IMG/VR virus record: IMGVR_UViG_3300017917_003822
Span: 62,001-126,000 of that record
DNA: 64,000 bases
Reading direction: 5' to 3' (one strand)
In this document: positions 6,428 through 64,000 of the stretch, piece by piece
Layout of the letters: each line of letters starts with the position of its first letter
Numbering within the stretch: the first letter of the stretch is position 1
Notes under the pieces: generated by a model
Database searches by the model: none
What the model saw: only the letters and a program-made list of their open reading frames with translations
Told to the model about the DNA's origin: nothing
Made by a program: the position numbers and the translations under genes

Positions 6428-6429
6428 TT

Positions 6430-7131
6430 ATGCCAAGTGAAAAGACTTATCTAGGTAGGGTAGTTGATATTAGGGATCCTCTTTATCAGGGTAGAGCTAA
6501 GATTGATGTTTTTGGATTTTTTGATGGTATCCCAGTGGAAGATCTCCCATGGGCGGAGCAGATAGCTGGTTTATCTTTTGGTGGAAATTTTGGTGGTGGT
6601 AATATTACCATACCTCGAGTTGGTGCTATAGTCGCTGTTCATTTCGAGGAGGATAACCATTATAAACTCACATACCACTATCTTAAAGAATTTGATCAGA
6701 CACTTTTAGATGAGTTAAAACAAGAAAATTCTTATGAAGGGACACATTCTCTTATCTCAGATTCAGAAGCTCAGCCAGGGGTACTTAAAATGATTTATAC
6801 AAGAAAGAATGGTCTGGTTTTTCAGCTTGGTGATGCGACAATACAACTAGATACTCAGAATGCTGGAACAGATAAGGAGAAACTTAGAATTAAAATAAAG
6901 ATGAATGAAGACGAGATCCGAATGGAAAAGAGTGGAGGAAAGCAGAAGGTTATAGTGAAATCTGAAAATATAGAGCTTGGCGAGGGAGCTGTTGAAAAAC
7001 TGGTTCTGGGTAATAAATTCCTTCAGCTATTTAATCAACACACCCATCCAACTGGTGTTGGACCATCGGGAGTTCCTATTCAGCCCATGGTGGATAATCA
7101 ACACTTAAGTCAGGTATCTAAAACTAAATAA
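6430..7131 (+). CDS. Baseplate central spike (gp5 OB-fold / gpV type)
   Basis: N-terminal GRVVDIRDPLYQGRAKI..LPWA..IPRVGAIVAVHF OB-fold motif. C-terminal FNQHTHP contains the HxH metal-binding tip motif. Confidence 0.85.
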   Translation: MPSEKTYLGRVVDIRDPLYQGRAKIDVFGFFDGIPVEDLPWAEQIAGLSFGGNFGGGNITIPRVGAIVAVHFEEDNHYKLTYHYLKEFDQTLLDELKQENSYEGTHSLISDSEAQPGVLKMIYTRKNGLVFQLGDATIQLDTQNAGTDKEKLRIKIKMNEDEIRMEKSGGKQKVIVKSENIELGEGAVEKLVLGNKFLQLFNQHTHPTGVGPSGVPIQPMVDNQHLSQVSKTK

Positions 7132-7133
7132 GA

Positions 7134-8831
7134 ATGCCAGCAAATTGGACATCATTTATTAGTAGCGTTAGTGCAAAATTTCAGTCGCAGGGAATAAGAG
7201 ATTCTGACGACCTGGCCGACTTTTTGACTAAACAATATGTTTCTGCCACTGTGGGTAAAGCACAATCACCATTTGGTAACCTTCATCAGAAGGGCAATGA
7301 TTCCATTATGAAATCTGCTTTTTCTAAGGCATTTAAGATGTTAGAGAACGAAAGAGTGCCTTCATTTGAGGATAAATCAGAGGATCCCCAGTATGCTGAT
7401 CTGGAGGAATCTCTTCCAGAAACGGATGCTGAAGGAGCTGCTGCTCAGGTTGAACTTGATTTTAGGGACTGGGCAGAAGCCAATAAAGAAACTATTCCTC
7501 CATTTAGGTATTCACAATTTTTTTCTCAGTTTCCCGGGTTTCCGAGAGACAGAAAACAGGTGGTCAGGGAAATAGCTAGAAAATTAATATTTCAATTTTC
7601 AATCTACCCTGATAGTTCATATATCCAATGGGTATATTCTCTGAGATACGGAAGTTATTCAGATTGGGGAAGAGAAGTTCTTGCCGAAATTGTTAAAATT
7701 ATTAAGCAGGAAACAACAAGTGATTTCAGAGTGGGAGAGGAAGTCCAAGGTTTTGCTAAATTTGAAAATTCGGTTAGATTTACCGGACGTGGATCATCAT
7801 CTAGAATAGCAAGCACTCTAGAAAACACTGACATAGACAACGTTGCTAAATTGCAGAGCGGGAATGTTCTGTTGAGAGGTAAGGTTGTCTCGGTAACTCA
7901 ACCTAAGGGAACAGGTTCACCGACATACAAGATCTCGTATTATGATAAAGTCGCAAAAAAATATTTAGTAAAAGAACTTAGACCCGGATCTATTCAGAAA
8001 AGAATAAGATTTGAAGATTTTGCCAGAACCCTGGAGGATGTAAATATAACAAATAGAATATTCCAGGAACAGAAGATATCTAATCCCAATAAGATACCTG
8101 ATTATATGTCAAGATCTTTTATAATCAAATTCTCATATTCACCGGCCTCCGATAAAAATTTTGTTTATCGAGCTTTTAAGTCTTCAAATTTAAATATACC
8201 AACTTCGGAGATTGATGATATTTTTTCCGCTAGTGATGTTTATTCACTATCGATAATAAATTTACTTTCCGCTAATTTTGGATTTTTTAGTAATAATATA
8301 GCTTCAGCTTTTAATTCGTTTGGTAGCAATTTTAATCTTCTGAATGATGTTAGAAATAGAAAGATTTCTGAATATAATGCAGAGGAAGAAAGGTACAGGA
8401 AACTCAAAATAAGATGGATTGAGGAAATAGCAAACGAAGCTAGAAAGAACGAGGACCCAGATAAGCCGGAAGATCCCTACTATATAATGGCCAAGGGGGT
8501 TATTGATTATTGGAAATCCACACTAGATCAACCGCTGTCACCAAATCCACCAGTTCCCCCAGCTGTAATATTACCTCCACTGGGTGGAAAATATGTTCCG
8601 ATTTATTATGGGAGTCAGGCAAATTTAGCTAATTATCTCAGAAGGGCTTTCAATAGTGGTAAAAGATTTAAAAGTGCACCCGAAATACCAATTGCCAGTA
8701 GAATTGTTGCGACCGCAATAGCTTTCTCTTTTGCTATGCATCTATTGGAGCTTAAATTCATCTATAGAGGTGGTATTCCAACAACGGGAAGCCCAGCTCC
8801 TATGATAGGTTTTGTCCCTCTGGTTTTTTAA
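7134..8831 (+). CDS. Hypothetical baseplate-associated protein
   Basis: 565-aa ORF starting 2 nt after the spike gene; no family recognised. Confidence 0.5.
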   Translation: MPANWTSFISSVSAKFQSQGIRDSDDLADFLTKQYVSATVGKAQSPFGNLHQKGNDSIMKSAFSKAFKMLENERVPSFEDKSEDPQYADLEESLPETDAEGAAAQVELDFRDWAEANKETIPPFRYSQFFSQFPGFPRDRKQVVREIARKLIFQFSIYPDSSYIQWVYSLRYGSYSDWGREVLAEIVKIIKQETTSDFRVGEEVQGFAKFENSVRFTGRGSSSRIASTLENTDIDNVAKLQSGNVLLRGKVVSVTQPKGTGSPTYKISYYDKVAKKYLVKELRPGSIQKRIRFEDFARTLEDVNITNRIFQEQKISNPNKIPDYMSRSFIIKFSYSPASDKNFVYRAFKSSNLNIPTSEIDDIFSASDVYSLSIINLLSANFGFFSNNIASAFNSFGSNFNLLNDVRNRKISEYNAEEERYRKLKIRWIEEIANEARKNEDPDKPEDPYYIMAKGVIDYWKSTLDQPLSPNPPVPPAVILPPLGGKYVPIYYGSQANLANYLRRAFNSGKRFKSAPEIPIASRIVATAIAFSFAMHLLELKFIYRGGIPTTGSPAPMIGFVPLVF

Positions 8832-17900: not shown

Positions 17901-19917
17901 CCTTTGGGACAATGTTGATAGAGGATGGGATTCATATAACGGAATCTGGGAATATCCAGCTGAGGGTGAAACCATTGAGATTGTTGAAAAATCAATACCT
18001 AGCGAAATCCTAGACTTTGCTACATACGGAAATAAATCGGAGGAGGGACAGAGTCTCTTTGTAAAATCTCCGACTGATCCGATTGGAGCTACTGGAGAAT
18101 TCTCTTTTACCCAATCAATTACTCAAATTTCTGAAGTTTATTCACTGGAAATATTTCCTGGACAATATGGATATGTTAATATCTCCACCGCATCACCTCA
18201 TGGTCTTGTTGATGGTGATGAGGTAACTATATCGGGATCAATTCCTCAACTTAATGGAAGATGGGTTGTTGGTGTTACTGGATCACTTACGACATTTAAA
18301 ATTCCGACTGCTTTTGATCTTTCCTGGAGTGGGATAAATTTAGAAACCTCACCAGTTAACCGATACGTTGCGGATCCTTTAATCTATCCAAATCAAAGGT
18401 TTACTGGAGCTGGTAACGTAACTGTTTTTGTTGGAGGAAGACCGATAGGAACAGCGGAAACTGGTGATACACTTTATAACACAGCTAACGCTATAACATC
18501 GGCTATAAATTCATTACAAACTTATCCTGATTATTTTGCTTCTTGCTTAGATCCTTCATCAGATCCAGTGAAGATATTAATTTCTGCACCTGATGATCTT
18601 GGTTCCGATCAAAATGGGGTTTCTTTTGATGTTGAAGTTTCAGGATCACTAAGTTTAGTTTCTTTATCTCCGTCCTTAACTGGTGGAGTTAGTCCAACCG
18701 AAACATATGTTTACTGGTCGGAGAATGATCCCGTACAACCTAACGAGAATCTTAAATACTGGGGAACGAAGAGACTCAACTGGGAGGTTTTCACAGATAG
18801 CACATGGGAAGATGCTTATGCACATAGCTGGTTTGATTTCGAATTTAACAACGATTGGCTGGGTGGATATGAGCTTCATACTATATTACCTGGTGATTAT
18901 GTTAAGATTAGCACCGCTAATTCGACATATCCATTTCCCGTTGGCGTAACTTTTTCAAGCGGACTGAGTGGTTTAACGTTACAGGAAGTTGCTGACCAGC
19001 TTAATAACTCCAATGAGCCACATATCACTAATTTTTATTATCGACCAATGCCTAGTGAATCGGGTTCTTTGAGTGCTATAGCTGCTCCAATAAACTTGGA
19101 TATAACTAATAATTTCCTGATTAATAGTAACTTCCAACCACCTCCATCATTAAATGGTGGAAGTCAGTTATTGATTGCCCAATTTGGATATACTGGAGGT
19201 ACACCTATTACAACAACAACATCGACGTCGACAACAACAACATCGACAACAACAACATCGACAACATCGACAACAACAACGACCACTATAGCTCCAACAA
19301 CGACGTCAACAACATCGACAACAACTATAGCTCCGACAACGACAACAACAACTGTCGATCCTTGTTTACTTGCAGGTACAGCTAGTATGGTTTATCCTAC
19401 TACAACGACAACAACATCGACATCGACAACAACGACAACAACAACGCCTATAATACTTTGTCAATGTTACACTCTGACTTGTACCCCTGATCCATTCCCT
19501 GCTCCGTACGTCGGATCTACCACTTTCCAATATGTTGACTGTTCCGGTGATACTCAAACAGTTTTCGTTAATGATGGATCACCAATAGACGTATGTGCTC
19601 AGGAAAATAGTGTCATAAGAATCGGAGGGGATCCTGGAACCATTGACATAAGCCCGTTTGATTGTTGCGATACCTCTCTTTACTTAGCATACAGATCGGT
19701 CTCGTCGGATCCGTCTGATGCTTGTGGTTTTATAACCAGCGAAGTATGCTATGTACAAGGATCTTATACCAGGGTATTTAATGATGCCGGAGGAACTTCA
19801 CCGTTCGTAGGAGGGAATGCATATTGGAAAGTCTCCAGAGCAATTGATTCGTATAGTGTCAGTATGCTAATAGACAACTTTGGATATCCGGTAGGTCTGT
19901 CATCACTTTGTTTTTAA
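14998..19917 (+). CDS. Large baseplate wedge protein (gp7/tail-I-like) with accessory domains and C-terminal poly-Thr and Cys-rich regions
   Basis: IFPYIGSYKGLINALKFFGY..IKEYW tail-I/gp7-like motif. Also cupredoxin-like, SH3/KOW-like and PKD-like segments, then Thr tracts. Confidence 0.6.
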   Translation: MANIKLNFFGKDGNPLNFDYIGPTGPTPLDSKFTYITSPSGVSSNGDIIFNFGTSTFIWELYPRDLNNFDLTAWYNEVKDFISKGANVYVNGEVAGQQNFKFKIQSVAKNPSGDFIINGQSDNYEGQNIISPNNQIYFTTTYENRPGGYFKGNIYFDPVSAGLYENEQIFVVQEFETASGYQYGLPHTGATGSTGSPRWRTRWYNDNYGETDVTDIIFTYAIEDQLEGGDGEPLIVNYPNMVLPVDINSGDYYQNGFIHTNLVNSEALAINVALNASEDAENIYERKLIVEDITTGTPEKIIEIDFYGQIIGEDERFKVLLENLGRAFYKSDSVILRDHDPDEPSPNFLEINEKRKELLVTGEEIFPYIGSYKGLINALKFFGYQDLRIKEYWLNLNYKNLKLESPVQQNQSFLNAIKSQQSKGYSLSYQIGDILDNENSGKYRLTQTYGPDKNGNYVLNVTSEDSLIPSRTYKKTALFGLYYDLNKVTDDTDAFGYPVVNDAFKFTQEEVLIKIFALKERLKRDYLPLNARIIDITGEGVYFTIYNTKSWTDVMERSDINSGFYFDFAPNPDFGFLEDLRNFSTRPLPSGIQTPSLYSNSYQTEVNFIGGTGSAIGFNGNFPGGMTGPNPTIFVNSGNTYQFNVVDSGNFGYDFYLTTDPLLTQIDPLGVMNNGATGGNSITWYVNPEQTSPVYYYSSNNPSLLNGVITVLPAKLSDLGNIVDPLSNQQIYTKEQNDSMMAAIENFYELKQNGKILELGDDDFDPTAYIDPVTGSQYQLPLGMPVILELVLDVWEWNELNINWNALTIPTYKVGDVVQVRQLDNFFYGVFGTVTSASYSTGEYTVLLDPPYNVPQNFAEADLLSSIQTYNLLTWENIDFSNSVEIEWIVNKTTTQSGSPYNFEFRGPIASFYRLAHFLPYTGEYKVICNIYDAFNAKTTVIKDRVIRVEPKTIDIDSWTRYREAERYLWDNVDRGWDSYNGIWEYPAEGETIEIVEKSIPSEILDFATYGNKSEEGQSLFVKSPTDPIGATGEFSFTQSITQISEVYSLEIFPGQYGYVNISTASPHGLVDGDEVTISGSIPQLNGRWVVGVTGSLTTFKIPTAFDLSWSGINLETSPVNRYVADPLIYPNQRFTGAGNVTVFVGGRPIGTAETGDTLYNTANAITSAINSLQTYPDYFASCLDPSSDPVKILISAPDDLGSDQNGVSFDVEVSGSLSLVSLSPSLTGGVSPTETYVYWSENDPVQPNENLKYWGTKRLNWEVFTDSTWEDAYAHSWFDFEFNNDWLGGYELHTILPGDYVKISTANSTYPFPVGVTFSSGLSGLTLQEVADQLNNSNEPHITNFYYRPMPSESGSLSAIAAPINLDITNNFLINSNFQPPPSLNGGSQLLIAQFGYTGGTPITTTTSTSTTTTSTTTTSTTSTTTTTTIAPTTTSTTSTTTIAPTTTTTTVDPCLLAGTASMVYPTTTTTTSTSTTTTTTTPIILCQCYTLTCTPDPFPAPYVGSTTFQYVDCSGDTQTVFVNDGSPIDVCAQENSVIRIGGDPGTIDISPFDCCDTSLYLAYRSVSSDPSDACGFITSEVCYVQGSYTRVFNDAGGTSPFVGGNAYWKVSRAIDSYSVSMLIDNFGYPVGLSSLCF
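19210..19446 (+). repeat. Mucin-like poly-Thr/Ser tracts (ACA/ACG/TCG-rich)
   Basis: Encodes TTTTSTSTTTTSTTTTSTTSTTTTTTIAPTTT... and TTTTTTSTSTTTTTTT. Confidence 0.95.
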
Positions 19918-54717: not shown

Positions 54718-55164
54718 ATGTCAACAGGAGAAAGAGCAGATTTTAATAAGATATTCGAACAAGAAAGATTCGAATGGAAGGAGAAGATACAGACACTATC
54801 ACTCCAGATGAAAGATATAAAAACATTGGCTAAAGCTCAGGTTGATCTTTTTAGTCAGCGTCAGGTTCTTTTGGAGTACAGTTATAAACTTGCTTCGATT
54901 ATATCCAAATTAAGCTCTAAATACAGATCGGAAAAAGCTAAGAAGCTTAAGGATTATTCGGAGAATAATGATGTTAGATACGGATCCAATGAGAAAACAG
55001 TTTTAATTGAGGGTGACTTAACCGAGATATCCGAGAAGATAGAATTGGTAGAAAGTCATAGAAAATTCATAGATCAGACTATACAAACTGTCGACCATAT
55101 GCTATATGGGGTGAAAAGTAGAATAGCATTAGAGGATTATTTAAGAGGATCCACAGTAAAATAA
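54718..55164 (+). CDS. Recombination mediator (UvsY-like)
   Basis: 148-aa helical protein directly upstream of UvsW, as in T4-like phages. Confidence 0.6.
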   Translation: MSTGERADFNKIFEQERFEWKEKIQTLSLQMKDIKTLAKAQVDLFSQRQVLLEYSYKLASIISKLSSKYRSEKAKKLKDYSENNDVRYGSNEKTVLIEGDLTEISEKIELVESHRKFIDQTIQTVDHMLYGVKSRIALEDYLRGSTVK

Positions 55165-55176
55165 ATATGTAATTAG

Positions 55177-56727
55177 ATGTTAAAATTTCAAGTTTCCGAA
55201 GATCAGCAGTGGATGATTTTGGTAGAATCTCCGGATGAGGTTGAGAAAAAACAAATTGATATTTCTCTAACTAAAAAAATCCACAACTTTTATTTTCATC
55301 CTCTCGTAAAAAAGAAGATATGGGATGGAAGTATCTGCTTTATAGAGAAGAAGGGTGGATTTTGGAAAGTTCCAATAGGTCTTTGGAGAGAGCTATTACA
55401 GATAGGGGAAGAGTACAACATAGAAATAGAAATAGTTGGCCTGGATAAGATAATTCTAAAAAGTCCAACTCTGGAGGAGTTTACTGAGTGGGTCAACGAT
55501 TTTTTTAAGGACGGTATTCTGGGTGATCCTAATAAAAAACCTAGAGATTATCAAATAGAAACAGCATGGAAGTTGATAAAGTATCGATATTCTGTTTCTG
55601 AAGTTGCAACATCTTCAGGTAAGACCTTAATCTCATTTATGATATTTGCATATTTGAAATCTAAGGGTCTCATAAGAAAATTTTTGATGATTGTACCCAA
55701 TACAAACTTAGTTTTCCAGGGCAGTGAGGATTTTATAGATTATGGACTGGATAGCCTGGGTGTTAAAATACAACAAATTGGAGGGGGAAGTAAGCTAAGA
55801 GATGGATGTGATATTATTATGGGTACCTTCCAGTCTCTTGTAAAACAAGGACCTGAATTTTTTGAGGAGATAGATTGTGTTTTCGTCGATGAGGCACACC
55901 ACACCAACAGCATGTCGATTAAAAAAATAGTTGCTCAGTGTATGCACTCCAAATGGAGATTTGGTTTAACTGGAACTCTGACTAAAAGAGGAACTGCTGA
56001 TTATTTAACAGTTCAGCAATTTCTTGGACCTCTAGTTGTTGAAATCCCGCCAAGTTTCCTTTTCGATAACAACTATGCAACTCCTGTTTCGATAAAGGTT
56101 GTTATAATGGATTGGTTGGAACCTGAATATAAGGAGAAGCTAGCAGAACTAAAACAAAACAACAAAGGCTCTGATAATAAGATAGAGGGTAACGAATTTT
56201 ATAACATAGAGAGAAAACTTGTTATCGAAAGCAAAAAAAGACTAAATTACGTTGTTGATTTTATAAATAAAACATCCAAGAATTCACTGGTTCTTTTCCA
56301 GTCAGTTAAGGATGAATACGGAAAGCAAATATGGAATTCATTAAGAGAAAAAAGCTCAGACAAGGAAGTTTTTTATGTTGACGGTGACACATCGGAAGCT
56401 CTGAGAGAGGAATATAAAACAAGGATGTCTAGTGGATCAAACAAAATACTTATAGCAACATACGGTACATTTTCTACCGGTATATCCATAAACAATCTGC
56501 ATAATATTTTTCTTGTTGAATCTTATAAGAGTGAAGTCCTAATTAAACAGAGTCTTGGTAGAGGTATGCGTAAAATGGACGGAAAGGAAAGGGTAAATGT
56601 AATAGATTTTGTTGATGACTTTAGTACGAAGGGATATCAAAATTATCTGATGCAACATGGTGATGCAAGAATACAGATCTATAGAAAGGAGTGTTTTGAT
56701 TATAAGATATTTAATGTCAAACTTTAA
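55177..56727 (+). CDS. uvsW: SF2 DNA helicase (UvsW-like)
   Basis: PRDYQ, ATSSGKT, VDEAH, FGLTGT, ATYGTFSTGI and QSLGRGMR motifs. Confidence 0.92.
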   Translation: MLKFQVSEDQQWMILVESPDEVEKKQIDISLTKKIHNFYFHPLVKKKIWDGSICFIEKKGGFWKVPIGLWRELLQIGEEYNIEIEIVGLDKIILKSPTLEEFTEWVNDFFKDGILGDPNKKPRDYQIETAWKLIKYRYSVSEVATSSGKTLISFMIFAYLKSKGLIRKFLMIVPNTNLVFQGSEDFIDYGLDSLGVKIQQIGGGSKLRDGCDIIMGTFQSLVKQGPEFFEEIDCVFVDEAHHTNSMSIKKIVAQCMHSKWRFGLTGTLTKRGTADYLTVQQFLGPLVVEIPPSFLFDNNYATPVSIKVVIMDWLEPEYKEKLAELKQNNKGSDNKIEGNEFYNIERKLVIESKKRLNYVVDFINKTSKNSLVLFQSVKDEYGKQIWNSLREKSSDKEVFYVDGDTSEALREEYKTRMSSGSNKILIATYGTFSTGISINNLHNIFLVESYKSEVLIKQSLGRGMRKMDGKERVNVIDFVDDFSTKGYQNYLMQHGDARIQIYRKECFDYKIFNVKL

Positions 56728-56737
56728 TTTTAATAAG

Positions 56738-56745
56738 GATATATA
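56738..56745 (+). promoter_or_regulatory. Putative late promoter GATATATA
   Basis: 26 nt upstream of the cassette of capsid-targeted proteins. Confidence 0.6.
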
Positions 56746-56763
56746 GAAAAATATGTTTTTATT

Positions 56764-57291
56764 ATGAATATTAAATCTTTCGATGATTTTATAGCCGAAA
56801 ATGAAGTTTATGGTGCTACAGGAAAAACTAAGTTCAGTTCATGGCTTAGAAACGTGAATGCCAGAGTTAAAGACTCGATGGGTGATTCATACTATTCTAG
56901 ATATTACGACGATCATAATGATCCTCATAAGACATCCAAAACTTTGGCTCAACTAATACCTGGAGCTATCCGACTTGTTACTGGTGCTGCTGCGGCAGTT
57001 TCTGATTTTTTCTTTAAAGGAGATAATAAAGAAAGCTTTTCTAAATTATCACGAGAAGATCTAAAATTAAGAAAAAAGGAAGTTGTTGATAAATGGGAGA
57101 GTGAAAATTTGGCATCGAAGAAAGTAACTGAGGAAGATGCTGAAAGATTCTATAAATCTGGAATATTGAGAGGTAAAAAATATTTCGGTAATGAGTATAA
57201 CCCAGCAAATCCTAAGAATAAGGACGAGGAAATGTATACCGATTATATTAATGATGTGATGGAGAGATACCACAAAAAATTAAAATCGTAA
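56764..57291 (+). CDS. Hypothetical protein with a capsid-targeting-like N-terminus
   Basis: Starts MNIKSFDDFIAENE; preceded by GATATATA. Confidence 0.6.
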   Translation: MNIKSFDDFIAENEVYGATGKTKFSSWLRNVNARVKDSMGDSYYSRYYDDHNDPHKTSKTLAQLIPGAIRLVTGAAAAVSDFFFKGDNKESFSKLSREDLKLRKKEVVDKWESENLASKKVTEEDAERFYKSGILRGKKYFGNEYNPANPKNKDEEMYTDYINDVMERYHKKLKS

Positions 57292-58226
57292 TGAATTTCG
57301 GTAAGGCTTTAAGATTTTCTGAATTTGTTCAATTGAATGAGGGTGGGGCTGCTATAAAAAGTTCTAGAAGAATCCGCGAAGACGAATTTCCGGGTACTCT
57401 TGACAACATAAAACAAAATCTTTTCCCTATTCTATCTATAGATCCGGTCAAACAAAACGATCAATATATCATAATAGGAAGCATAGGTAAAAAGAAAAAT
57501 CCGGATGATACTTCAGGGGATCTTGATTTGGGTTATGATAGTTCATGGTTTTCCAGAACCCATAATATCCCAGTAAAGGAGTCATCGTCATTTGTTTATA
57601 ATTTACTCTCTGAAAAGTTACCGGAGGTTCTTGGATTTAATCCCGAGATCAATTTTATGAAGGGATTAAATATAGTTAGTGTTGGTTGGCCTATTAAGGG
57701 GGATGTTAATAATGGGATAGTACAGTTAGATCTTATTCCAATATCAAGTATGGATTGGGCGGAGTTCATATATTATTCACCCAATTATAAAATAGGGGAA
57801 AGTAAATATAAATCTGCTCATAGAAACTGGCTTTTAGCTGCTATATTGGCATCAAGGAAAGAAATAATAGGCAATGATGATAATGGTGAAATTATGGACT
57901 ATAACTCTCCTGTATTGATTCTAAGTGATGGGTTATTTTGGCACACCAAATCTTATCGTGGAAAATTAAAAGATAGGCTTAAAAATCCAAAAAAAGTAGA
58001 GGGTAGCGAGAGATTTATTACTAGAGATCCACAGGAATTTATCGATTTTGCACTAGGAACTGGTTACAGTTTGAATGACGTCAAAACTTTTGAATCTCTA
58101 TTAAATATTATAAATTCTCCGGATTTTGAATTGAAAGAAAAATTACCAGAGATTAAGAGTAAATTTATAGAGTATCTAACTAGAGCTAATTTGGAGATAC
58201 CGGCCGAAATAAATCAAATACCTTAA
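57291..58226 (+). CDS. Pol-beta-superfamily nucleotidyltransferase
   Basis: IGSIGKK...SGDLDLG (GS..DxD) plus a third Asp in VQLDLI; N-terminal RFSEFVQLNE-GG. Confidence 0.7.
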   Translation: MNFGKALRFSEFVQLNEGGAAIKSSRRIREDEFPGTLDNIKQNLFPILSIDPVKQNDQYIIIGSIGKKKNPDDTSGDLDLGYDSSWFSRTHNIPVKESSSFVYNLLSEKLPEVLGFNPEINFMKGLNIVSVGWPIKGDVNNGIVQLDLIPISSMDWAEFIYYSPNYKIGESKYKSAHRNWLLAAILASRKEIIGNDDNGEIMDYNSPVLILSDGLFWHTKSYRGKLKDRLKNPKKVEGSERFITRDPQEFIDFALGTGYSLNDVKTFESLLNIINSPDFELKEKLPEIKSKFIEYLTRANLEIPAEINQIP

Positions 58227-58252
58227 AGTATAAAACAGTAAAGAATTTAGAC

Positions 58253-60313
58253 ATGTCAGGAATAAGTCATCTATATGATATCTATAATAAGAAGGGTAAA
58301 GAGTTTATTGATAATCTCTTCAATTCTTATGTGACCGTTAATGAAAAAATGGACGGATCAGCCTTTGTTTTCGAAAGAGATTTAGAAACTGGTAGATTTA
58401 TCTTTTATAAAAGGGACCAAAGAAACCCAATTACGTTGGTGGATAGGACCTTAATGAAATACTATGAAATTCCTATTCAGTACATAGAATCTTTACCTCC
58501 TCATATTATAAAGGAGATCCCGAGAGGTTGGAAATTTGGATTAGAGTATTTTGCAAATTTAAAGCCTGTTGAGATAGCATATGATAGATTACCAAAAAAT
58601 AATCTGATCTTATCTTACGTTCATCCAAAAGACGAGAACGGAAAACAAACAACGATACAAAACAAGGAAAAACTGGACACTTGGGCAGATTTGATTGGTG
58701 TGGAAAGACCTCCGATAGTTTTTCAGGGGTATCTTTCGGACGAACAGAAAGACAAGATTTTAGACTTTTTAAGAACCCCTTTTGATCAACTTGTCACAGA
58801 ATACAGAACAAAAAGTTTTGTTAGGTACATTATAGGTGTTCTGAACCCAGAAGCCAAGAATAGTGCTTTAAATAAAGATCTGGATAAACCCATTGAGGGA
58901 ATAGTATTTAGATTTGGTGAGGAGAATAACGAATCTGAGCCTATTCTTTCTAAAATGGTCGATCCGGTCTTTACTGAAATGGCTAAGGAAAAGTACAAGA
59001 AGAAAACTGAGGAAAAACCTAGTGATTTCTTGGGGATAACCATACTGGATGTGATGAATTTTATACTGGAGAGAGGAGTGGAAAGCTTCAATATCAGTGG
59101 AGACAGCGACGATGAGAGATACATCTCGTTTATATCTGACGTATTTTCAAAATTCCTAGATGAGTATGGGTACAAATATAAGGGTGCTGACTTTCAGGAA
59201 CCTGAATATCTTAAAAAGGATGAATTTAGATTAAATAGACCACTAATAAAAGACAAGAGAGTCCTTAGTTATCTTGAATCTGACGATTCCTACGAATCTT
59301 TGTTTAAGTTAATATTAAATTCCTTCAGAAAAATTAAAAAAAGAGCTGGTGGAATAATAACATCAGGAATAATAGATCAGTTTAATTTACTGGTTAAAGA
59401 TATACAGGGAGCAGTTTCTAGTAAATCTACACCAAAAATACAGGAATCACAGGTTCCTTCATTTCTGGACTTTAAGAAAAATAATCTCTCACTTAGAAAT
59501 ATTGACTATACAACATCAGAGAGTGAGGAATCTGATAAATCTGGTGATGAATTTGATCATTTCTATTCATATAACGAATTTATCTCTGCCTTAGAAACTC
59601 TTGACACTCAGGAAAAACCGAGCGAGATAGTGACGGAGGTCGAGGAGAATTTGGAAGAAAATAAAAAAAGTGAACTTCAGCCTGTTAATCTTCTCGTTGG
59701 TAGATTCCAGCCCTTCCATAACGGTCACCTCAAGATGATTAAAAAGATGGAGGAGGAAAATGAACTTCCTAGCATTATAGCGGTAGTCCATCCGGGTCAT
59801 AATAAATCTGGCAAAACACCATTTGACGTGGATCTAGTTTCTAAATATATGGAGACACTTGTTAGAGATAACCCAGGAAAGATATTGGGATATTTTATTG
59901 TCAATCGAGGGTTGCTTGGTGTAATATACGGAAAGGCCAAAGAACTTGGATACCTTGTTAAAGCTATTGCTGCTGGGGATGATCGTGTTGACGATTATAA
60001 TAAACAAGTGGAATATCTTAAAAAAGCTGGTGGCGATTTTCCGGAGGACATTAAAATAATCCAAACACAAAGATCAGGTAGCGGAACTGATGTGAGAGAT
60101 AAAATCGAAAGTGAAGATTTTGTTGCTTTTAAAAAAATGGTTCCCCCTGCTATATCCTCGTTTTATGAACAGCTGGTTTCTGCACAGAAGGGAAGAAGCA
60201 TCAAGGAATCCTCTGAGACTATCTATTACCTAAATGAATTCGGTGACGAGAAAACTCTGGAAGAAGTTCAGAACGAAATAAAAGAAAAAGAAATTAAAAA
60301 TAAGGAAGAATAA
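58253..60313 (+). CDS. Fusion of an ATP-dependent ligase-type NTase and a HIGH-motif cytidylyltransferase/NMNAT-like domain
   Basis: N-terminal motifs I (NEKMDGS), III (GLEYF), IV (IEGIVF) and V (SKMVD). C-terminal VGRFQPFHNGH...AGDDR...SGTDVR. Confidence 0.75.
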   Translation: MSGISHLYDIYNKKGKEFIDNLFNSYVTVNEKMDGSAFVFERDLETGRFIFYKRDQRNPITLVDRTLMKYYEIPIQYIESLPPHIIKEIPRGWKFGLEYFANLKPVEIAYDRLPKNNLILSYVHPKDENGKQTTIQNKEKLDTWADLIGVERPPIVFQGYLSDEQKDKILDFLRTPFDQLVTEYRTKSFVRYIIGVLNPEAKNSALNKDLDKPIEGIVFRFGEENNESEPILSKMVDPVFTEMAKEKYKKKTEEKPSDFLGITILDVMNFILERGVESFNISGDSDDERYISFISDVFSKFLDEYGYKYKGADFQEPEYLKKDEFRLNRPLIKDKRVLSYLESDDSYESLFKLILNSFRKIKKRAGGIITSGIIDQFNLLVKDIQGAVSSKSTPKIQESQVPSFLDFKKNNLSLRNIDYTTSESEESDKSGDEFDHFYSYNEFISALETLDTQEKPSEIVTEVEENLEENKKSELQPVNLLVGRFQPFHNGHLKMIKKMEEENELPSIIAVVHPGHNKSGKTPFDVDLVSKYMETLVRDNPGKILGYFIVNRGLLGVIYGKAKELGYLVKAIAAGDDRVDDYNKQVEYLKKAGGDFPEDIKIIQTQRSGSGTDVRDKIESEDFVAFKKMVPPAISSFYEQLVSAQKGRSIKESSETIYYLNEFGDEKTLEEVQNEIKEKEIKNKEE

Positions 60314-60314
60314 G

Positions 60315-60857
60315 ATGGAAAAAATTATAACATTTGGACAATTCATAAATAACATGAATGAATCAGATGGTTTTGGTACTTCACCCTTTCTGCTAGAAAA
60401 AGTTAGTGACATATATCATTACTTTTTTAATCTGGATCAGGAAAAATCTGAGGATCAAATGGGATATCACTTAATTATAGGAAAATATTCAGACCAGGAA
60501 GTCATAGAAGGTCCAAAAAATTCATACTGTGTACTAACTATAAACCAGATTTCGCCTGAAGTTATAGATGATATAGCAGTTAAAAAAGAGGACGTTCCGC
60601 AAACTAACAAGGAAAAATTTAAGATGGGCGGAAATGATATATCTAGACTTATGGAATATGTTTTCAAATGTGTTACTAACTATCTGGAAGCAAATCCCAA
60701 GGTTACTAGAATATATGATGAAATGCAGGAAAATCTAGTTTTAGAGGGTAAAGGTGAATATATCGAGTATATGAAATCCATCGCAATTTCACAACTTGGT
60801 GGGAATTGGTCGATCCAACAGGGGGCATCCAAAATTTCAGTAATAATTAGCAGATAA
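60315..60857 (+). CDS. Hypothetical protein with a capsid-targeting-like N-terminus
   Basis: Starts MEKIITFGQFINNMNES. Confidence 0.6.
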   Translation: MEKIITFGQFINNMNESDGFGTSPFLLEKVSDIYHYFFNLDQEKSEDQMGYHLIIGKYSDQEVIEGPKNSYCVLTINQISPEVIDDIAVKKEDVPQTNKEKFKMGGNDISRLMEYVFKCVTNYLEANPKVTRIYDEMQENLVLEGKGEYIEYMKSIAISQLGGNWSIQQGASKISVIISR

Positions 60858-60910: not shown

Positions 60911-61090
60911 ATGGAAAAATTTGAACAAATCAAGGCTCTTATCGAGCAAACTCAAGGAGACGTTGAAAAATTCTTCAACAAAGGAAACGGAACAGCTGGT
61001 ACTAGAGTTAGACAAGCTATGCAGGAATTAAAAAAACTTGCTCAGGATCTTAGAATTGAGGTGCAAGATGCTAAAAACAACAAAGCTTAA
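60911..61090 (+). CDS. Histone H1-like protein (Hc1 family), 59 aa, absent from the ORF track
   Basis: Translates to MEKFEQIKALIEQTQGDVEKFFNKGNGTAGTRVRQAMQELKKLAQDLRIEVQDAKNNKA, with the KGNxxAGTRxR signature. Confidence 0.85.
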   Translation: MEKFEQIKALIEQTQGDVEKFFNKGNGTAGTRVRQAMQELKKLAQDLRIEVQDAKNNKA

Positions 61091-61114: not shown

Positions 61115-61348
61115 ATGGCATATTATCTTGTAAAAGTTAATTTTGAATCTGGTGACGTTAATAAAGCCGGTGATCCAATTTACAAAAAATCCGAATTCCT
61201 AGTTGCTGCTGAATCTGTAATCGAATGTGAAAGAAAAGTAGCAGAATACATGGACGGAACGGTTGGAGGATTTGAAACATTTCAAATCTCCAAAACAAAA
61301 ATAGAATCAGTCATTTATGACAAAGAAAAGTACGAAGATATCATCTAA
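61115..61348 (+). CDS. DUF4494-like protein
   Basis: The pattern YYLVKVNFE..G..KKSEFLVAAESVIECERKVAEYM..FET..ISKTKI matches a Bacteroidota family. Confidence 0.65.
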   Translation: MAYYLVKVNFESGDVNKAGDPIYKKSEFLVAAESVIECERKVAEYMDGTVGGFETFQISKTKIESVIYDKEKYEDII

Positions 61349-61580
61349 AAATCCATCCGAAACCAGTTCGTATGTTCCCCCGCAATCACCAATTGCTATT
61401 CAGCCTGGTGATACTGGATTTACGACAGTGGGAAAGGCATATAATAGGTTCATTTGGACATTTAGCGACTGGAAAGATAGAAAAAAGAAGATAATAAATC
61501 CCGATACCAATTGGGATCTAAATTCGAAACCCATGACTGATAACGAATGGGAAAAAAAGAAAAAGGACTTATATTTATAA
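61317..61580 (+). CDS. Hypothetical protein
   Basis: 87-aa ORF that overlaps the previous gene and ends inside a terminator. Confidence 0.5.
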   Translation: MTKKSTKISSKNPSETSSYVPPQSPIAIQPGDTGFTTVGKAYNRFIWTFSDWKDRKKKIINPDTNWDLNSKPMTDNEWEKKKKDLYL

Positions 61581-61591
61581 GTCCTTTTTTT
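61560..61591 (+). terminator. Intrinsic terminator, possibly bidirectional
   Basis: Perfect inverted repeat AAAAAGGACTTAT-attt-ATAAGTCCTTTTT with a T run. Confidence 0.8.
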
Positions 61592-61594
61592 ATT

Positions 61595-61602
61595 GATATA
61601 TA
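61595..61602 (+). promoter_or_regulatory. Putative late promoter GATATATA
   Basis: Immediately after a terminator and upstream of the DUF3008 and collagen fibre genes. Confidence 0.65.
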
Positions 61603-62020: not shown

Positions 62021-64000
62021 ATGGCTCAATTTCCAATCAATCCCCGAATAGGGCAAGCTTTTCTAGCAGATTCCAAAATATATGTTTGGAGTGGAACTCA
62101 GTGGGTTGCGGCACAGGTTGGAGGGACAGGAGACGGATCATCAGGAACCTCTGGAACTAGTGGAGTTGATGGAAATTTTTATGGATCCTCTGGAACCTCT
62201 GGAACCTCCGGGGTTAATGGATCCAGTGGAACAAGTGGTACACCGGGATCTTCTGGAATATCAGGATCTTTCGGAACAAGTGGATCTAGTGGAACATCAG
62301 GATCTACCGGAAGTCCAGGATCTTCTGGGTCTAGTGGATCTTCTGGTGCTAATGGTTCGTCTGGAACATCAGGAATTAATGGATCCAGTGGAACAAGTGG
62401 CTCGAATGGATCATCAGGAACTTCTGGATCTAGTGGAAGCAGCGGAACTTCAGGCACTAGAGGATCTAGTGGAACTTCGGGTTCTTCGGGAACATCTGGT
62501 GCTAATGGTTCTTCAGGAACATCTGGATCTAATGGATCTTCGGGTGTCAGTGGAATTAATGGTATAGATGGAACTTCTGGATCTAGTGGAACTTCAGGTA
62601 CTAGAGGATCTAGTGGAACTTCTGGTTCTTCAGGAACATCTGGTGCTAATGGTTCTTCAGGAACCTCTGGTGCTAACGGTTCATCGGGTTCATCGGGAGT
62701 TAGTGGAATTAATGGTGTTGATGGAACCTCAGGATCTAGTGGAAGTAGCGGAACTTCAGGTACTGGCGGATCGAGTGGATCTTCGGGTTCTTCCGGAACA
62801 TCTGGCTCTAATGGTTCTTCAGGAACATCTGGTGCTAATGGTTCATCGGGATCTTCGGGTGTCAGTGGAATTAATGGTGTTGATGGAACTTCAGGATCTA
62901 GCGGTACTTCTGGTGTTAATGGCTCTAGTGGAACATCCGGTTCATCAGGATCGTCAGGAACCAGTGGAATCACCGGATCGTCGGGATCTAGTGGATCTTC
63001 GGGTGTCAGTGGAATTAATGGTGTTGATGGAACTTCAGGATCTAGCGGTACTTCTGGTGTTAATGGATCTAGTGGTACTTCGGGATCTGGTGGATCGAGT
63101 GGAACTTCAGGATCTGGTGGATCTAGTGGAACTTCGGGATCTAGAGGATCTTCAGGAACCAGTGGGACAAGTGGATCCTCAGGGTCTAGTGGAGATTCTG
63201 GCTCTAGTGGAACATCCGGTTCATCAGGATCGTCAGGAACCAGTGGAATCACTGGATCGTCGGGATCTAGTGGATCGTCGGGTGTCAGTGGAGTTAATGG
63301 TGTTGATGGAACCTCAGGATCTAGTGGTACCTCTGGTGTTAATGGATCTAGTGGTACTTCGGGATCTGGTGGATCGAGTGGAACTTCAGGATCTAGAGGA
63401 TCTTCGGGAACCAGTGGAACCAGTGGATCTTCAGGATCTAGTGGAGCTTCTGGATCTAGTGGTACCTCCGGTTCTAGTGGTTTATCAGGATCTAGTGGAA
63501 CTTCGGGATCTAGAGGATCTTCGGGAACCAGTGGAACCAGTGGATCTTCAGGATCTAGTGGATCTTCAGGAGTCAGCGGGGTTAACGGTGTTGATGGTTC
63601 TTCCGGATCCAGTGGAACATCCGGAAGTAACGGAACTCCGGGTTCTTCAGGTTCTTCAGGTTCTTCAGGTTCTTCAGGTTCTTCAGGTTCTTCAGGAACT
63701 TCGGGATCTAGAGGATCCAGTGGAACATCTGGTATAAACGGTTCTTCCGGCTCTTCGGGAACGTCAGGGTCCAGTGGAACATCAGGGACAAGAGGAACTA
63801 GCGGAACATCTGGTATAAGTGGAAACGACGCATCTAATTCAGGGAGATGGGAATATTCAAATTCGATTGCACCGACCAATCCAGGCACCAGCAGATTCTG
63901 TACAAATAGTTCTTCTCTAGGATCTGTTAATGTATTAAGTATTAGTATTTACGACATAAACTCGGTGGATTACACTAAATGGTTTCAAGCATCTGACACA
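62021..64000 (+). CDS. Gly-Ser/Thr collagen-like fibre protein, truncated by the window end and absent from the ORF track
   Basis: ATG at 62021 (MAQFPINPRIGQAF..YVWSGTQW) with an open frame to 64000; a long Gly-X-Y region, then a non-repetitive domain (GRWEY..). Confidence 0.85.
   Translation, partial: MAQFPINPRIGQAFLADSKIYVWSGTQWVAAQVGGTGDGSSGTSGTSGVDGNFYGSSGTSGTSGVNGSSGTSGTPGSSGISGSFGTSGSSGTSGSTGSPGSSGSSGSSGANGSSGTSGINGSSGTSGSNGSSGTSGSSGSSGTSGTRGSSGTSGSSGTSGANGSSGTSGSNGSSGVSGINGIDGTSGSSGTSGTRGSSGTSGSSGTSGANGSSGTSGANGSSGSSGVSGINGVDGTSGSSGSSGTSGTGGSSGSSGSSGTSGSNGSSGTSGANGSSGSSGVSGINGVDGTSGSSGTSGVNGSSGTSGSSGSSGTSGITGSSGSSGSSGVSGINGVDGTSGSSGTSGVNGSSGTSGSGGSSGTSGSGGSSGTSGSRGSSGTSGTSGSSGSSGDSGSSGTSGSSGSSGTSGITGSSGSSGSSGVSGVNGVDGTSGSSGTSGVNGSSGTSGSGGSSGTSGSRGSSGTSGTSGSSGSSGASGSSGTSGSSGLSGSSGTSGSRGSSGTSGTSGSSGSSGSSGVSGVNGVDGSSGSSGTSGSNGTPGSSGSSGSSGSSGSSGSSGTSGSRGSSGTSGINGSSGSSGTSGSSGTSGTRGTSGTSGISGNDASNSGRWEYSNSIAPTNPGTSRFCTNSSSLGSVNVLSISIYDINSVDYTKWFQASDT
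62183..63829 (+). repeat. About 183 Gly-X-Y triplets (GSS/GTS/GVS/GIN/GVD), including (GGTTCTTCA)6 at 63641-63694 and larger internal duplications
   Basis: Visible directly; 1647 nt equals 183 x 9 nt. Confidence 0.92.

Follow-up and report, generated by a model that had tools for sequence, protein, structure and literature searches.

Candidate head-targeting leaders on a nucleotidyltransferase cassette of a T4-related jumbo phage

The DNA analysed here, referred to as the window, is a stretch of 64,000 nucleotides (genome bases 62001-126000) of IMG/VR record IMGVR_UViG_3300017917_003822, a phage genome of 270,629 bp with 36% G+C, estimated to be 99% complete and recovered from a pond metagenome. 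Positions are window coordinates unless marked as genome positions. Near its right end, the window carries a cassette of four genes, named A to D, three of which begin with a short leader that resembles the capsid-targeting sequence (CTS) of phage T4. The original prediction had described four tightly coupled genes behind a sequence motif, and all four open reading frames (ORFs) and the motif, GATATATA, are present as described. A and B overlap by 1 nt (A stop/B start), B and C are separated by 26 nt and C and D by 1 nt, and no terminator-like site was found between A and D. The features are as follows, with a slash marking the predicted cut in each leader.

56738-56745, plus strand: GATATATA, promoter-like box and candidate T4-style late promoter, 18 nt before the A start codon
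56764-57291, plus strand: gene A, 175 residues, from the ORF list; no known fold
56764-56805, plus strand: A leader, residues 1-12 or 1-14, MNIKSFDDFIAE/NE, with an I-A-E site
57291-58226, plus strand: gene B, 311 residues, Pol-beta-superfamily nucleotidyltransferase by signature and fold matches
57291-57341, plus strand: B leader, residues 1-17, ending LNE/GG
57477-57527, plus strand: B signature G63-S64...D77-x-D79; third Asp, D147, at 57729-57731
58253-60313, plus strand: gene C, 686 residues, whole ORF from the ORF list
58253-59437, plus strand: C residues 1-395, RNA-ligase-like covalent nucleotidyltransferase domain and helical region
59438-59668, plus strand: C linker, residues 396-472, with two leader-like motifs conserved in relatives
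59561-59596, plus strand: second linker motif of C, FYSYNEFISALE/T
59669-60313, plus strand: C residues 473-686, HIGH-motif nucleotidyltransferase by Pfam and fold matches
60315-60857, plus strand: gene D, 180 residues, from the ORF list; no known fold
60315-60362, plus strand: D leader, residues 1-16, ending MNE/SDGFGT

The leaders of A, B and D and the T4-type head machinery

The leaders of A, B and D share one form, in which two aromatic residues separated by two others are followed by a spacer, the site [LIVM]-x-E and a small residue, all within 12-17 residues. The N-terminal strings quoted by the original prediction were found in each protein: KSFDDFIAENE (A 4-14), RFSEFVQLNE (B 8-17) and TFGQFINNMNE (D 6-16). 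The general expression that it had drawn from these real strings needs a correction, since in A the basic residue is not beside the first Phe (K-S-F), and the first residue class has to admit S. The expression F.[DEQ]F.{2,4}[NE]E matched only five times in the 85,532 residues of the crude proteome, and four of the five matches (A, B, D and one more) fell within the first 25 residues of a protein, against 0.5 expected.

Conservation was examined in 80 related IMG/VR loci, with B identity down to 48%. Conservation in these loci extends to the leaders of A, B and D, to the two motifs in the C linker and to GATATATA upstream. The search for homologues of B gave 361 matches, and F9, F12, E17, G18 and G19 of B are invariant in an alignment of 25 sequences. 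The B leader occurs in 54 distinct nucleotide versions in the 80 loci, which permits a comparison of codons. Both aromatics are F or Y in all 54 versions; the residue before the predicted cut (P1) is always E, encoded by GAA in 34 and by GAG in 20; P1'-P2' is always GG, with all four Gly codons in use; and P3 is L, I, V or M, written with 14 different codons. Such varied codons for constant residues argue for selection on the peptide and not on the RNA. The same data bear on the proposal that the common N-terminus serves late genes at the level of mRNA or of translation initiation and has no function as a peptide. The leader does co-occur with GATATATA and its codons are AT-rich, but it is the amino acids that are conserved: every Leu, Gly and Glu codon is used, and F and Y replace each other. 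Moreover, the leader does not keep a fixed distance from the start codon, GTG starts occur in some relatives, a copy inside C is conserved, and orthologues that lack the leader start exactly after the Glu. We disfavour this proposal and regard it as very improbable.

In the AlphaFold2 (AF2) model of B, the leader is disordered. Two orthologues of B lack it altogether and begin at the residue after E17, as MGGRAF in Agrobacterium phage Atu_ph07 and as MSGMAIKG in Lak-B5, and one more-distant homologue retains just MNKIFE/GG. Given the disorder in the model and the start of the leaderless orthologues right after E17, the leader is a separable add-on with a predicted gp21-type site at its end. 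In relatives, D has a variable spacer followed by M/L/I/V-x-E/[SGA]DGFGT, with the GTG starts occurring in distant relatives, while A keeps its leader on a variable body of 147-197 residues.

Studies on T4 indicate that targeting to the head requires no more than the first 10 residues of IPIII and depends mainly on residues 4 and 7 (Y, F), that processing depends on residues 8 and 10 (I, E), and that the gp21 protease cuts after L/I-X-E (PMC9026906). In the T4 record, IPII and IPIII start with MKTYQEFIAE/A and IPI with MKTFKEF. The likeness of the leaders to this sequence, which had been claimed from inspection, was borne out, with the aromatics placed as T4 positions 4 and 7 and an L/I-x-E end. 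The spacing [FYW]-x-x-[FYW] lies within the first 5-16 residues of A, B, D and about 23 other N-termini of the genome.

The genome also encodes the T4-type machinery that could read such leaders. A gp21-type prohead protease was recognised by PF03420 (Peptidase_S77; 30.5 bits, over the cut-off) and by phrog_207 (E 4e-37). It forms part of a protein of 649 residues (genome 46011-47960), in which a protease domain at about residues 20-230 is joined to a scaffold-like, coiled-coil-like extension of about 400-450 residues. ORF-300 of phage PTm1, in a record that bears no flags from proteomics, has the same fused layout and is annotated 'prohead core scaffolding protein and protease'; protease and scaffold appear to be a single polypeptide in this lineage. 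The major capsid protein belongs to the gp23 family and aligns end to end with T4 gp23, and a gp24-like paralogue is encoded as well. Candidate cut sites are predicted in the capsid protein at IIE-18 and LNE-43 (...SLNE/SAG), upstream of the position aligned with the T4 gp23 cut.

Judged by its sequence, the phage is a T4-related jumbo phage. Its nearest record by capsid protein is LR756500, an unannotated 462-kb 'huge phage' (46%), followed by the Prevotella Lak megaphages (about 40%) and then by jumbo phages of Tenacibaculum, Flavobacterium, Chryseobacterium and Sphingomonas. Near-identical DNA was found in metagenomes of pond, lake, wastewater, soil and salt-marsh, and a blastn search of phage records with the cassette gave no match.

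The enzymes of the cassette

The original prediction had spoken of a nucleotidyltransferase cassette. This holds for B and for the C-terminal half of C, and on weaker grounds for the ligase-like N-terminal half of C; A and D have no recognisable enzymatic fold. A had no match in Pfam, PHROG or NCBIfam, D had only a weak Pfam match to DUF6272, and Atlas searches with both returned merely unnamed virus clusters at chance-level scores.

The assignment of B to the Pol-beta nucleotidyltransferases is borne out by its signature and by fold matches. In the signature IGSIGKKKNPxDTSGDLD, residues G63, S64, D77 and D79 are invariant in 25 sequences, as is D147. Sequence searches with B gave no match in Pfam (E up to 0.1), PHROG or NCBIfam, and profile searches of PDB sequences gave nothing meaningful. 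The AF2 model of B has a mean predicted local distance difference test (pLDDT) score of 74.8, and in a Foldseek search of PDB its top 50 matches were all Pol-beta-superfamily enzymes (50/50; E 0.04-0.1), including class I CCA-adding enzyme, Pol lambda, beta and mu, TdT and CD-NTases. An AFDB cluster named polymerase nucleotidyl transferase domain protein was matched with E 3e-12 and template-modelling (TM) scores of 0.63/0.67, and the ESM-Atlas neighbours of B (TM 0.57-0.83) include NTP_transf_2 proteins. On these models, B has a Pol-beta palm fold. Its membership of RlaP was considered and rejected, as a search of the complete genome with PF10127 returned nothing at E up to 10.

The full length of AsfvPolX, the African swine fever virus (ASFV) enzyme, is covered by its alignment with B. 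In ASFV, too, a small palm-plus-thumb Pol-beta-type enzyme stands beside a ligase-type gene in a large DNA virus. The cassette may be read as a set of tagged, packaged enzymes that act on DNA, with B as a minimal family-X-like gap-filling enzyme or terminal transferase and the ligase-like domain as the sealing activity, so that nicks, gaps or ends of the genome would be repaired in the head or just after injection. We consider this unlikely, and keep RNA as the preferred substrate.

C had been described as a fusion of a ligase-type and a HIGH-type nucleotidyltransferase. The HIGH half was confirmed, while the ligase half is indicated by sub-threshold Pfam scores, motifs and language-model neighbours. 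EKMDG occupies residues 31-35, within the motif I sequence NEKMDGS (58340-58360), and NEK[MI]DGS is present in all 80 loci having C. Residues 1-250 scored 21-24 bits against PF09414 (RNA_ligase), below the cut-off of 27; sub-threshold matches to PF09414 were found in 10 of 13 members of the C family (best E 2e-5) and in a stand-alone homologue. E98 (motif III), E215-G216 (motif IV) and K234 (motif V) were picked out by inspection as plausible further ligase motifs; like K32, they are invariant among close homologues. The Atlas language-model neighbours of the N-terminal domain (score 0.95) are mostly RNA_ligase (PF09414) clusters. BLASTP found no similarity between this domain and T4 Rnl2, and its profile gave nothing meaningful against PDB sequences.

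C is without an N-terminal leader. Its N-terminus (…VTVNE/K) was considered as one and rejected, since NE-K belongs to motif I of the ligases, and stand-alone homologues show the same conserved segment. Leader-like segments do occur in the linker, as had been claimed: IQES..SFLDF at residues 396-407 (59438-59473) and SYNEFISALE at residues 439-448. All relatives have them, in the forms [IV]-N/Q-E-S...S-F-x-[DE]-F and F-Y-S-Y-N-E-F-I-S-x-L-E/T. An exhaustive search with the C-terminal part of C returned many stand-alone HIGH nucleotidyltransferases. The N-termini of a number of these are leaders of the same type directly before GRFQPFHxGH, for example MKHIKLFEQFINE, MKKFISFKEFLNE and MKNLPTFDQFLIE; others begin at the domain itself, with no leader, and the homologues of cultured Xanthomonas and Stenotrophomonas phages are of this untagged kind. 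As stand-alone HIGH nucleotidyltransferases bear such a leader at the N-terminus, the best interpretation of the internal motif of C is that of a leader, now placed at a domain junction, from a HIGH gene that was once, or is elsewhere, separate.

The HIGH half itself (residues 473-648) matched Pfam CTP_transf_like PF01467 with 26.9 bits, above the cut-off of 21. Its GRFQPFHNGH motif is encoded at 59699-59728, and every relative has it as GRFQPFHxGH. In phmmer, the C-terminal half matched an archaeal nicotinamide mononucleotide (NMN) adenylyltransferase (NMNAT) with E 3e-4, the SGTxVR motif included. The corresponding region of the AF2 model is confident, and Foldseek matched it to phosphopantetheine adenylyltransferase (PPAT), NMNAT and nicotinate mononucleotide adenylyltransferase (NaMNAT) with TM 0.6-0.7, E 6e-6 and probability 1.00. 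According to this model, the C-terminal half is a HIGH nucleotidyltransferase. Its likeness to archaeal-type NMNAT and PPAT extends to the Rossmann-like fold, the HxGH motif (GRFQPFHNGH) and a C-terminal SxxxxR-type motif. It differs from them in that its scores lie below every equivalog cut-off (33 against 127 bits for PRK01153, 25 against 181 bits for TIGR01527) and in that the domain is here ligase-fused or leader-tagged, unlike the cellular enzymes. With NMNAT scores far below the cut-off and an equal fold fit to PPAT, no substrate can be assigned to it.

It is nevertheless possible to take the HIGH domain as an NMNAT that rebuilds NAD+ against NAD-depleting defences, with a tagged adenylate kinase balancing the adenine nucleotides and the other enzymes as accessories. 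The best sequence matches of the domain are archaeal NMNATs, NAD salvage with HIGH nucleotidyltransferases is known in jumbo phages (PMC7824862), and an adenylate kinase of this genome bears the same tag as the cassette. However, besides the low NMNAT score and the equally good PPAT match, no NMN-forming partner was seen in the cassette, and the constant partnership of the domain with ligase-like and Pol-beta domains would be left unexplained. We regard NAD or nucleotide restoration as an improbable main role of the module.

The catalytic motifs were checked for degeneracy, which would have spoken against active enzymes. G-S...D-x-D and the third Asp of B, and NEK[MI]DGS and GRFQPFHxGH of C, are conserved in the 80 loci, and the cassette enzymes look active from these motifs. 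The three domains also recur together elsewhere. In distant T4-like contigs, the region downstream of UvsW holds one or more small tagged proteins, a tagged EKxDG protein of 421-437 residues and a tagged HIGH nucleotidyltransferase, along with a B homologue or a stand-alone homologue of the N-terminal domain of C. In LR756500.1, a tagged EKLDG protein of 421 residues (4704-5969) lies directly upstream of the C homologue (6001-7962). Large virus clusters in the Atlas contain ligase-HIGH fusions of 683 and 619 residues, and in others a B-like fold is fused to a CTP_transf_like (HIGH) domain, some of these being also flagged DNA_pol_B_palm. The fusion and adjacency of the three enzyme domains in several combinations argue for one pathway.

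Pol-beta nucleotidyltransferases act beside RNA ligases in the RNA repair of jumbo phages (PMC7824862; PMC12776372). The genome has two further, untagged genes of the RNA_ligase family. One is a strong match (E 1e-29), and the second adjoins metallophosphatase-like and P-loop kinase-like genes, recognised by eye from their N-terminal motifs. With these genes present, the tagged module adds to a conventional RNA-repair set.

The tag in the genome, late transcription and neighbouring genes

The leader, or tag, extends well beyond the cassette. A strict regular expression found 26 tagged N-termini, against 7 expected from internal windows, and about 35 were counted by eye, so that about 10% of the proteome bears the tag. 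The tag is found on the three genes that follow the capsid gene directly, on further genes of the head region and on two enzymes of recognisable function:

genome 138700-139320: adenylate kinase (PF00406, E 4e-39), leader …SFSGFLNE/R…
genome 150676-152133: RimK-like ATP-grasp enzyme (PF08443, E 8e-34), leader …NFFSFLNE/A…

The tag therefore marks several ATP-using enzymes and not the cassette alone. So wide a use, on metabolic enzymes among others, would suit a leader that is a real peptide element with a role other than a capsid address, such as bringing late proteins to some other assembly, or serving as an inhibitory propeptide that a different protease removes; the cassette would in that case work late in infection in the cytoplasm. 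Against this, the phage has a gp21-type protease, the leader agrees with T4 in those residues on which the function of the CTS depends, tagged genes cluster directly behind the capsid gene, and an invariant Glu with small residues after it suits the cleavage rule of gp21. We judge a non-capsid role to be distinctly unlikely.

The leader was also sought at the DNA level in six genomes, as a pattern encoding [FY]-x-[DE]-F-h-x-E, with the reversed pattern as control and T4 as positive control. The counts were:

This genome: 10 matches, control 1
LR756500: 27 matches, control 8
Lak-B5: 8 matches, control 5
PTm1: 4 matches, control 1
T4: 5 matches, control 1

The T4 matches include both known CTS genes, ipII and ipIII, and the count for Lak-B5 shows no real excess over its control, in agreement with its untagged B orthologue. 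The other T4 matches (NC_000866) lie at 19101-19121 (minus strand), 126116-126136 (plus) and 154965-154985 (plus), and read FKEFIKE, YKDFLNE and FHEFFDE. At the right end of the present genome (262348-270386, minus strand) there is a run of small genes of 92-272 residues, almost all with a leader (MKKISSFEEFINE, MKHIELYENFLNE, MIRILNFNSFINE), which recalls the variable internal-protein loci of T-even phages.

The box before A is the top-enriched 8-mer within 80 nt upstream of genes in the whole genome. GATATATA has 48 copies on both strands, 40 of them in the 80 nt upstream of gene starts, usually 15-30 nt from the start codon. It precedes the protease gene, the post-capsid genes and many tagged genes, and also a large gene 5' of the protease, probably the portal gene, and several large genes of the window, probably tail genes. 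Genes with a leader are enriched for it (odds ratio 7.7, p = 2e-5). In relatives, the box stands 15-20 nt upstream of 50 of the 54 distinct A-like genes, and in distant ones D has its own copy. The genome further encodes a gp55-like sigma factor ORF (E 4.5e-6); thus, both marks of a T4-style late promoter, a single AT-rich -10-like box before virion genes and a gp55-type sigma factor, are present. Given this factor and the sharing of the box with virion genes, the simplest reading of GATATATA is a T4-style late promoter with another consensus, as the T4 late box, TATAAATA, differs from it. In seven places, at genome 191148, 219444, 220777 (minus strand), 225557, 227143, 263383 (minus strand) and 263945, the box lies only 4-5 nt before an ATG; if it is -10-like, the mRNAs of these genes would be leaderless or nearly so.

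The cassette is flanked by genes of a different character:

54718-55164, plus strand: UvsY-like gene, replication/recombination context, without GATATATA and without leader
55177-56727, plus strand: UvsW-like helicase gene, replication/recombination context, without GATATATA and without leader
60911-61090, plus strand: Hc1 histone-like gene, 59 residues (PF07432, E 5e-24)
61115-61348, plus strand: DUF4494-like gene, from Pfam
61317-61580, plus strand: ORF of 87 residues after the DUF4494-like gene
61560-61589, plus strand: strong terminator-like palindrome

The palindrome probably ends a transcription unit that also holds the Hc1 gene and the two small genes, and the next GATATATA follows at 61595. 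UvsY and UvsW mark the conserved position of the module in relatives, where the order UvsY, UvsW, A, B, C, D, Hc1 is retained down to 48% B identity; some relatives have an additional untagged gene of 141-150 residues between B and C. The Hc1 and DUF4494-like genes are kept after D in relatives and neither bears a leader. The Hc1 protein could be a DNA-condensing head protein.

Beyond this unit, a collagen-like gene of 987 residues with G-x-y repeats (GSSGTSG...) runs from 62021 across the window end (64000) to genome 126984, and G+C reaches 48% in its region. ORFs on both strands at 62082-63888, among them a minus-strand ORF with Pro at every third residue, were rejected as genes, being shadow frames of the collagen-like gene. 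Outside the window, an ORF of 629 residues (genome 128664-130553) has an Hsp70/DnaK-like start (MAKVIGIDLGTTNS...), as judged by eye; such a protein would be an unusual phage cargo.

The packaging model and its known counterparts

Our preferred reading, held with slightly better than even confidence, is that the cassette is a late operon whose products would be addressed to the interior of the head by T4-type propeptides. The leaders would bind the prohead scaffolding core, and the protease would then cut after the Glu, freeing mature enzymes inside the head. For C, the internal leader-like element would provide the means of entry, and a cut may separate its ligase-like half from its HIGH half. 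The enzymes would leave with the DNA and act before any phage gene expression. What they would do there is the weakest part of the model. We prefer a set for the healing and sealing of nucleic-acid ends, those of RNA in particular, in which damaged 3' ends would be extended with nucleotides by the Pol-beta enzyme and sealed by the ligase-like domain, and the part of the HIGH enzyme would be to produce or restore an adenylylated cofactor or substrate. Such a set might blunt host defences that cut RNA or deplete nucleotides or NAD. As for the three packaged activities that had been proposed at the outset, the head machinery, the tags, the folds of B and the HIGH domain and the shared box are in keeping with them, but an N-terminal leader stands on one enzyme domain only, that of B.

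Several observations weigh against the model. Whereas the T4 CTS has a fixed length of 10 residues, the leaders here differ in their offset from Met1 and in the spacer before the Glu. About 26-35 tagged genes would mean far more types of cargo than T4 has, and might indicate that the motif is used for something else; their number, with an adenylate kinase among them, is the chief reason for caution in taking the tag as a sign of head loading. In C, the internal motif ends in A-L-E, where [LIM]-[NS]-E is found elsewhere, and an internal CTS is without tested precedent. The AF2 model of C is unusable over residues 1-472 (pLDDT <50), because the alignment is shallow. In the C homologue of LR756500, the Lys of motif I is replaced by Asn, and motif IV has DS for EG; this protein may be an inactivated copy backed by a paralogue. 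RNA repair may already be covered by the untagged genes. Finally, the one environmental RNA library has only eight short contigs over the region and is uninformative on timing.

A broader proposal follows the same lines, and we hold it with somewhat less than even confidence. An uncultured and abundant clade of T4-related jumbo phages may load and inject an enzymatic toolkit by means of a portable T4-like tag on about one in ten of its genes, the toolkit comprising the three-domain module, the adenylate kinase, the ATP-grasp enzyme and more, and the tag being gained, lost and buried in fusions. If this is true, sequence could directly reveal which proteins such phages inject; provided that the tag works as in T4, the set of injected proteins, first anti-defence weapons included, would become predictable in a large uncultured phage group. 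Pre-loaded cargo would then extend beyond small inhibitors or ADP-ribosyltransferases to whole nucleotide-transfer enzymes. Ligase-like, HIGH and Pol-beta domains, repeatedly fused or adjacent, define a module of three enzymes open to biochemical tests, and the short tag could serve as a packaging handle for engineering phages of hosts other than E. coli.

CTS-directed loading and gp21 trimming are already known in T4. It has been proposed that T4-like phages load diverse proteins through the CTS (PMC9026906), and myoviruses were predicted to package ADP-ribosyltransferases and Macro, NADAR and Nudix enzymes, with head-packaged enzymes predicted to be widespread (PMC9503650). In the literature searched, we found neither a T4-type tag in this jumbo-phage clade, nor its scale, nor such a tag on Pol-beta, HIGH or ligase-like enzymes, an internal copy in a fusion, or the recurring three-domain module.

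Among known systems, the enzymes themselves come close to RlaP (PF10127), a Pol-beta nucleotidyltransferase whose gene lies beside an RNA-ligase-family gene in jumbo phages, the two being proposed to add nucleotides and then seal. B falls outside the RlaP model, however, and in the present cassette a HIGH nucleotidyltransferase is the obligatory third partner and the leaders are of capsid type. With regard to loading, ejection and inner-body proteins of phiKZ, 201phi2-1 and SPN3US are cleaved after S/A-x-E by a gp21-related protease, and their propeptides have been proposed as addresses (PMC5694885). These large phages likewise load many different head proteins, enzymes included, that are trimmed after Glu. 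Their propeptides are mostly longer than 100 residues and follow another cleavage rule, and the phage described here is not phiKZ-like, having UvsW, UvsY, gp32 and a T4-type gp23.

The closest counterpart is the set of T4 internal proteins, IPI, IPII, IPIII and Alt. Common to both are a short N-terminal propeptide with aromatics three residues apart, an L/I-x-E site and a small residue, as well as a gp21-family protease and a gp23-family capsid protein. In both, unrelated cargo proteins share the tag only, and tagged genes are clustered and variable. The differences are those of lineage and of scale: this phage belongs to a distant lineage, with the relatives of Lak, LR756500 and the Tenacibaculum phages, and has about 26-35 tagged genes where T4 has a handful. 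One cargo carries the motif inside a two-domain fusion, and leader offset and spacer are variable. Whereas T4 loads small basic proteins and an ADP-ribosyltransferase, the predicted cargo here, known from sequence alone, consists of nucleotide-handling enzymes.

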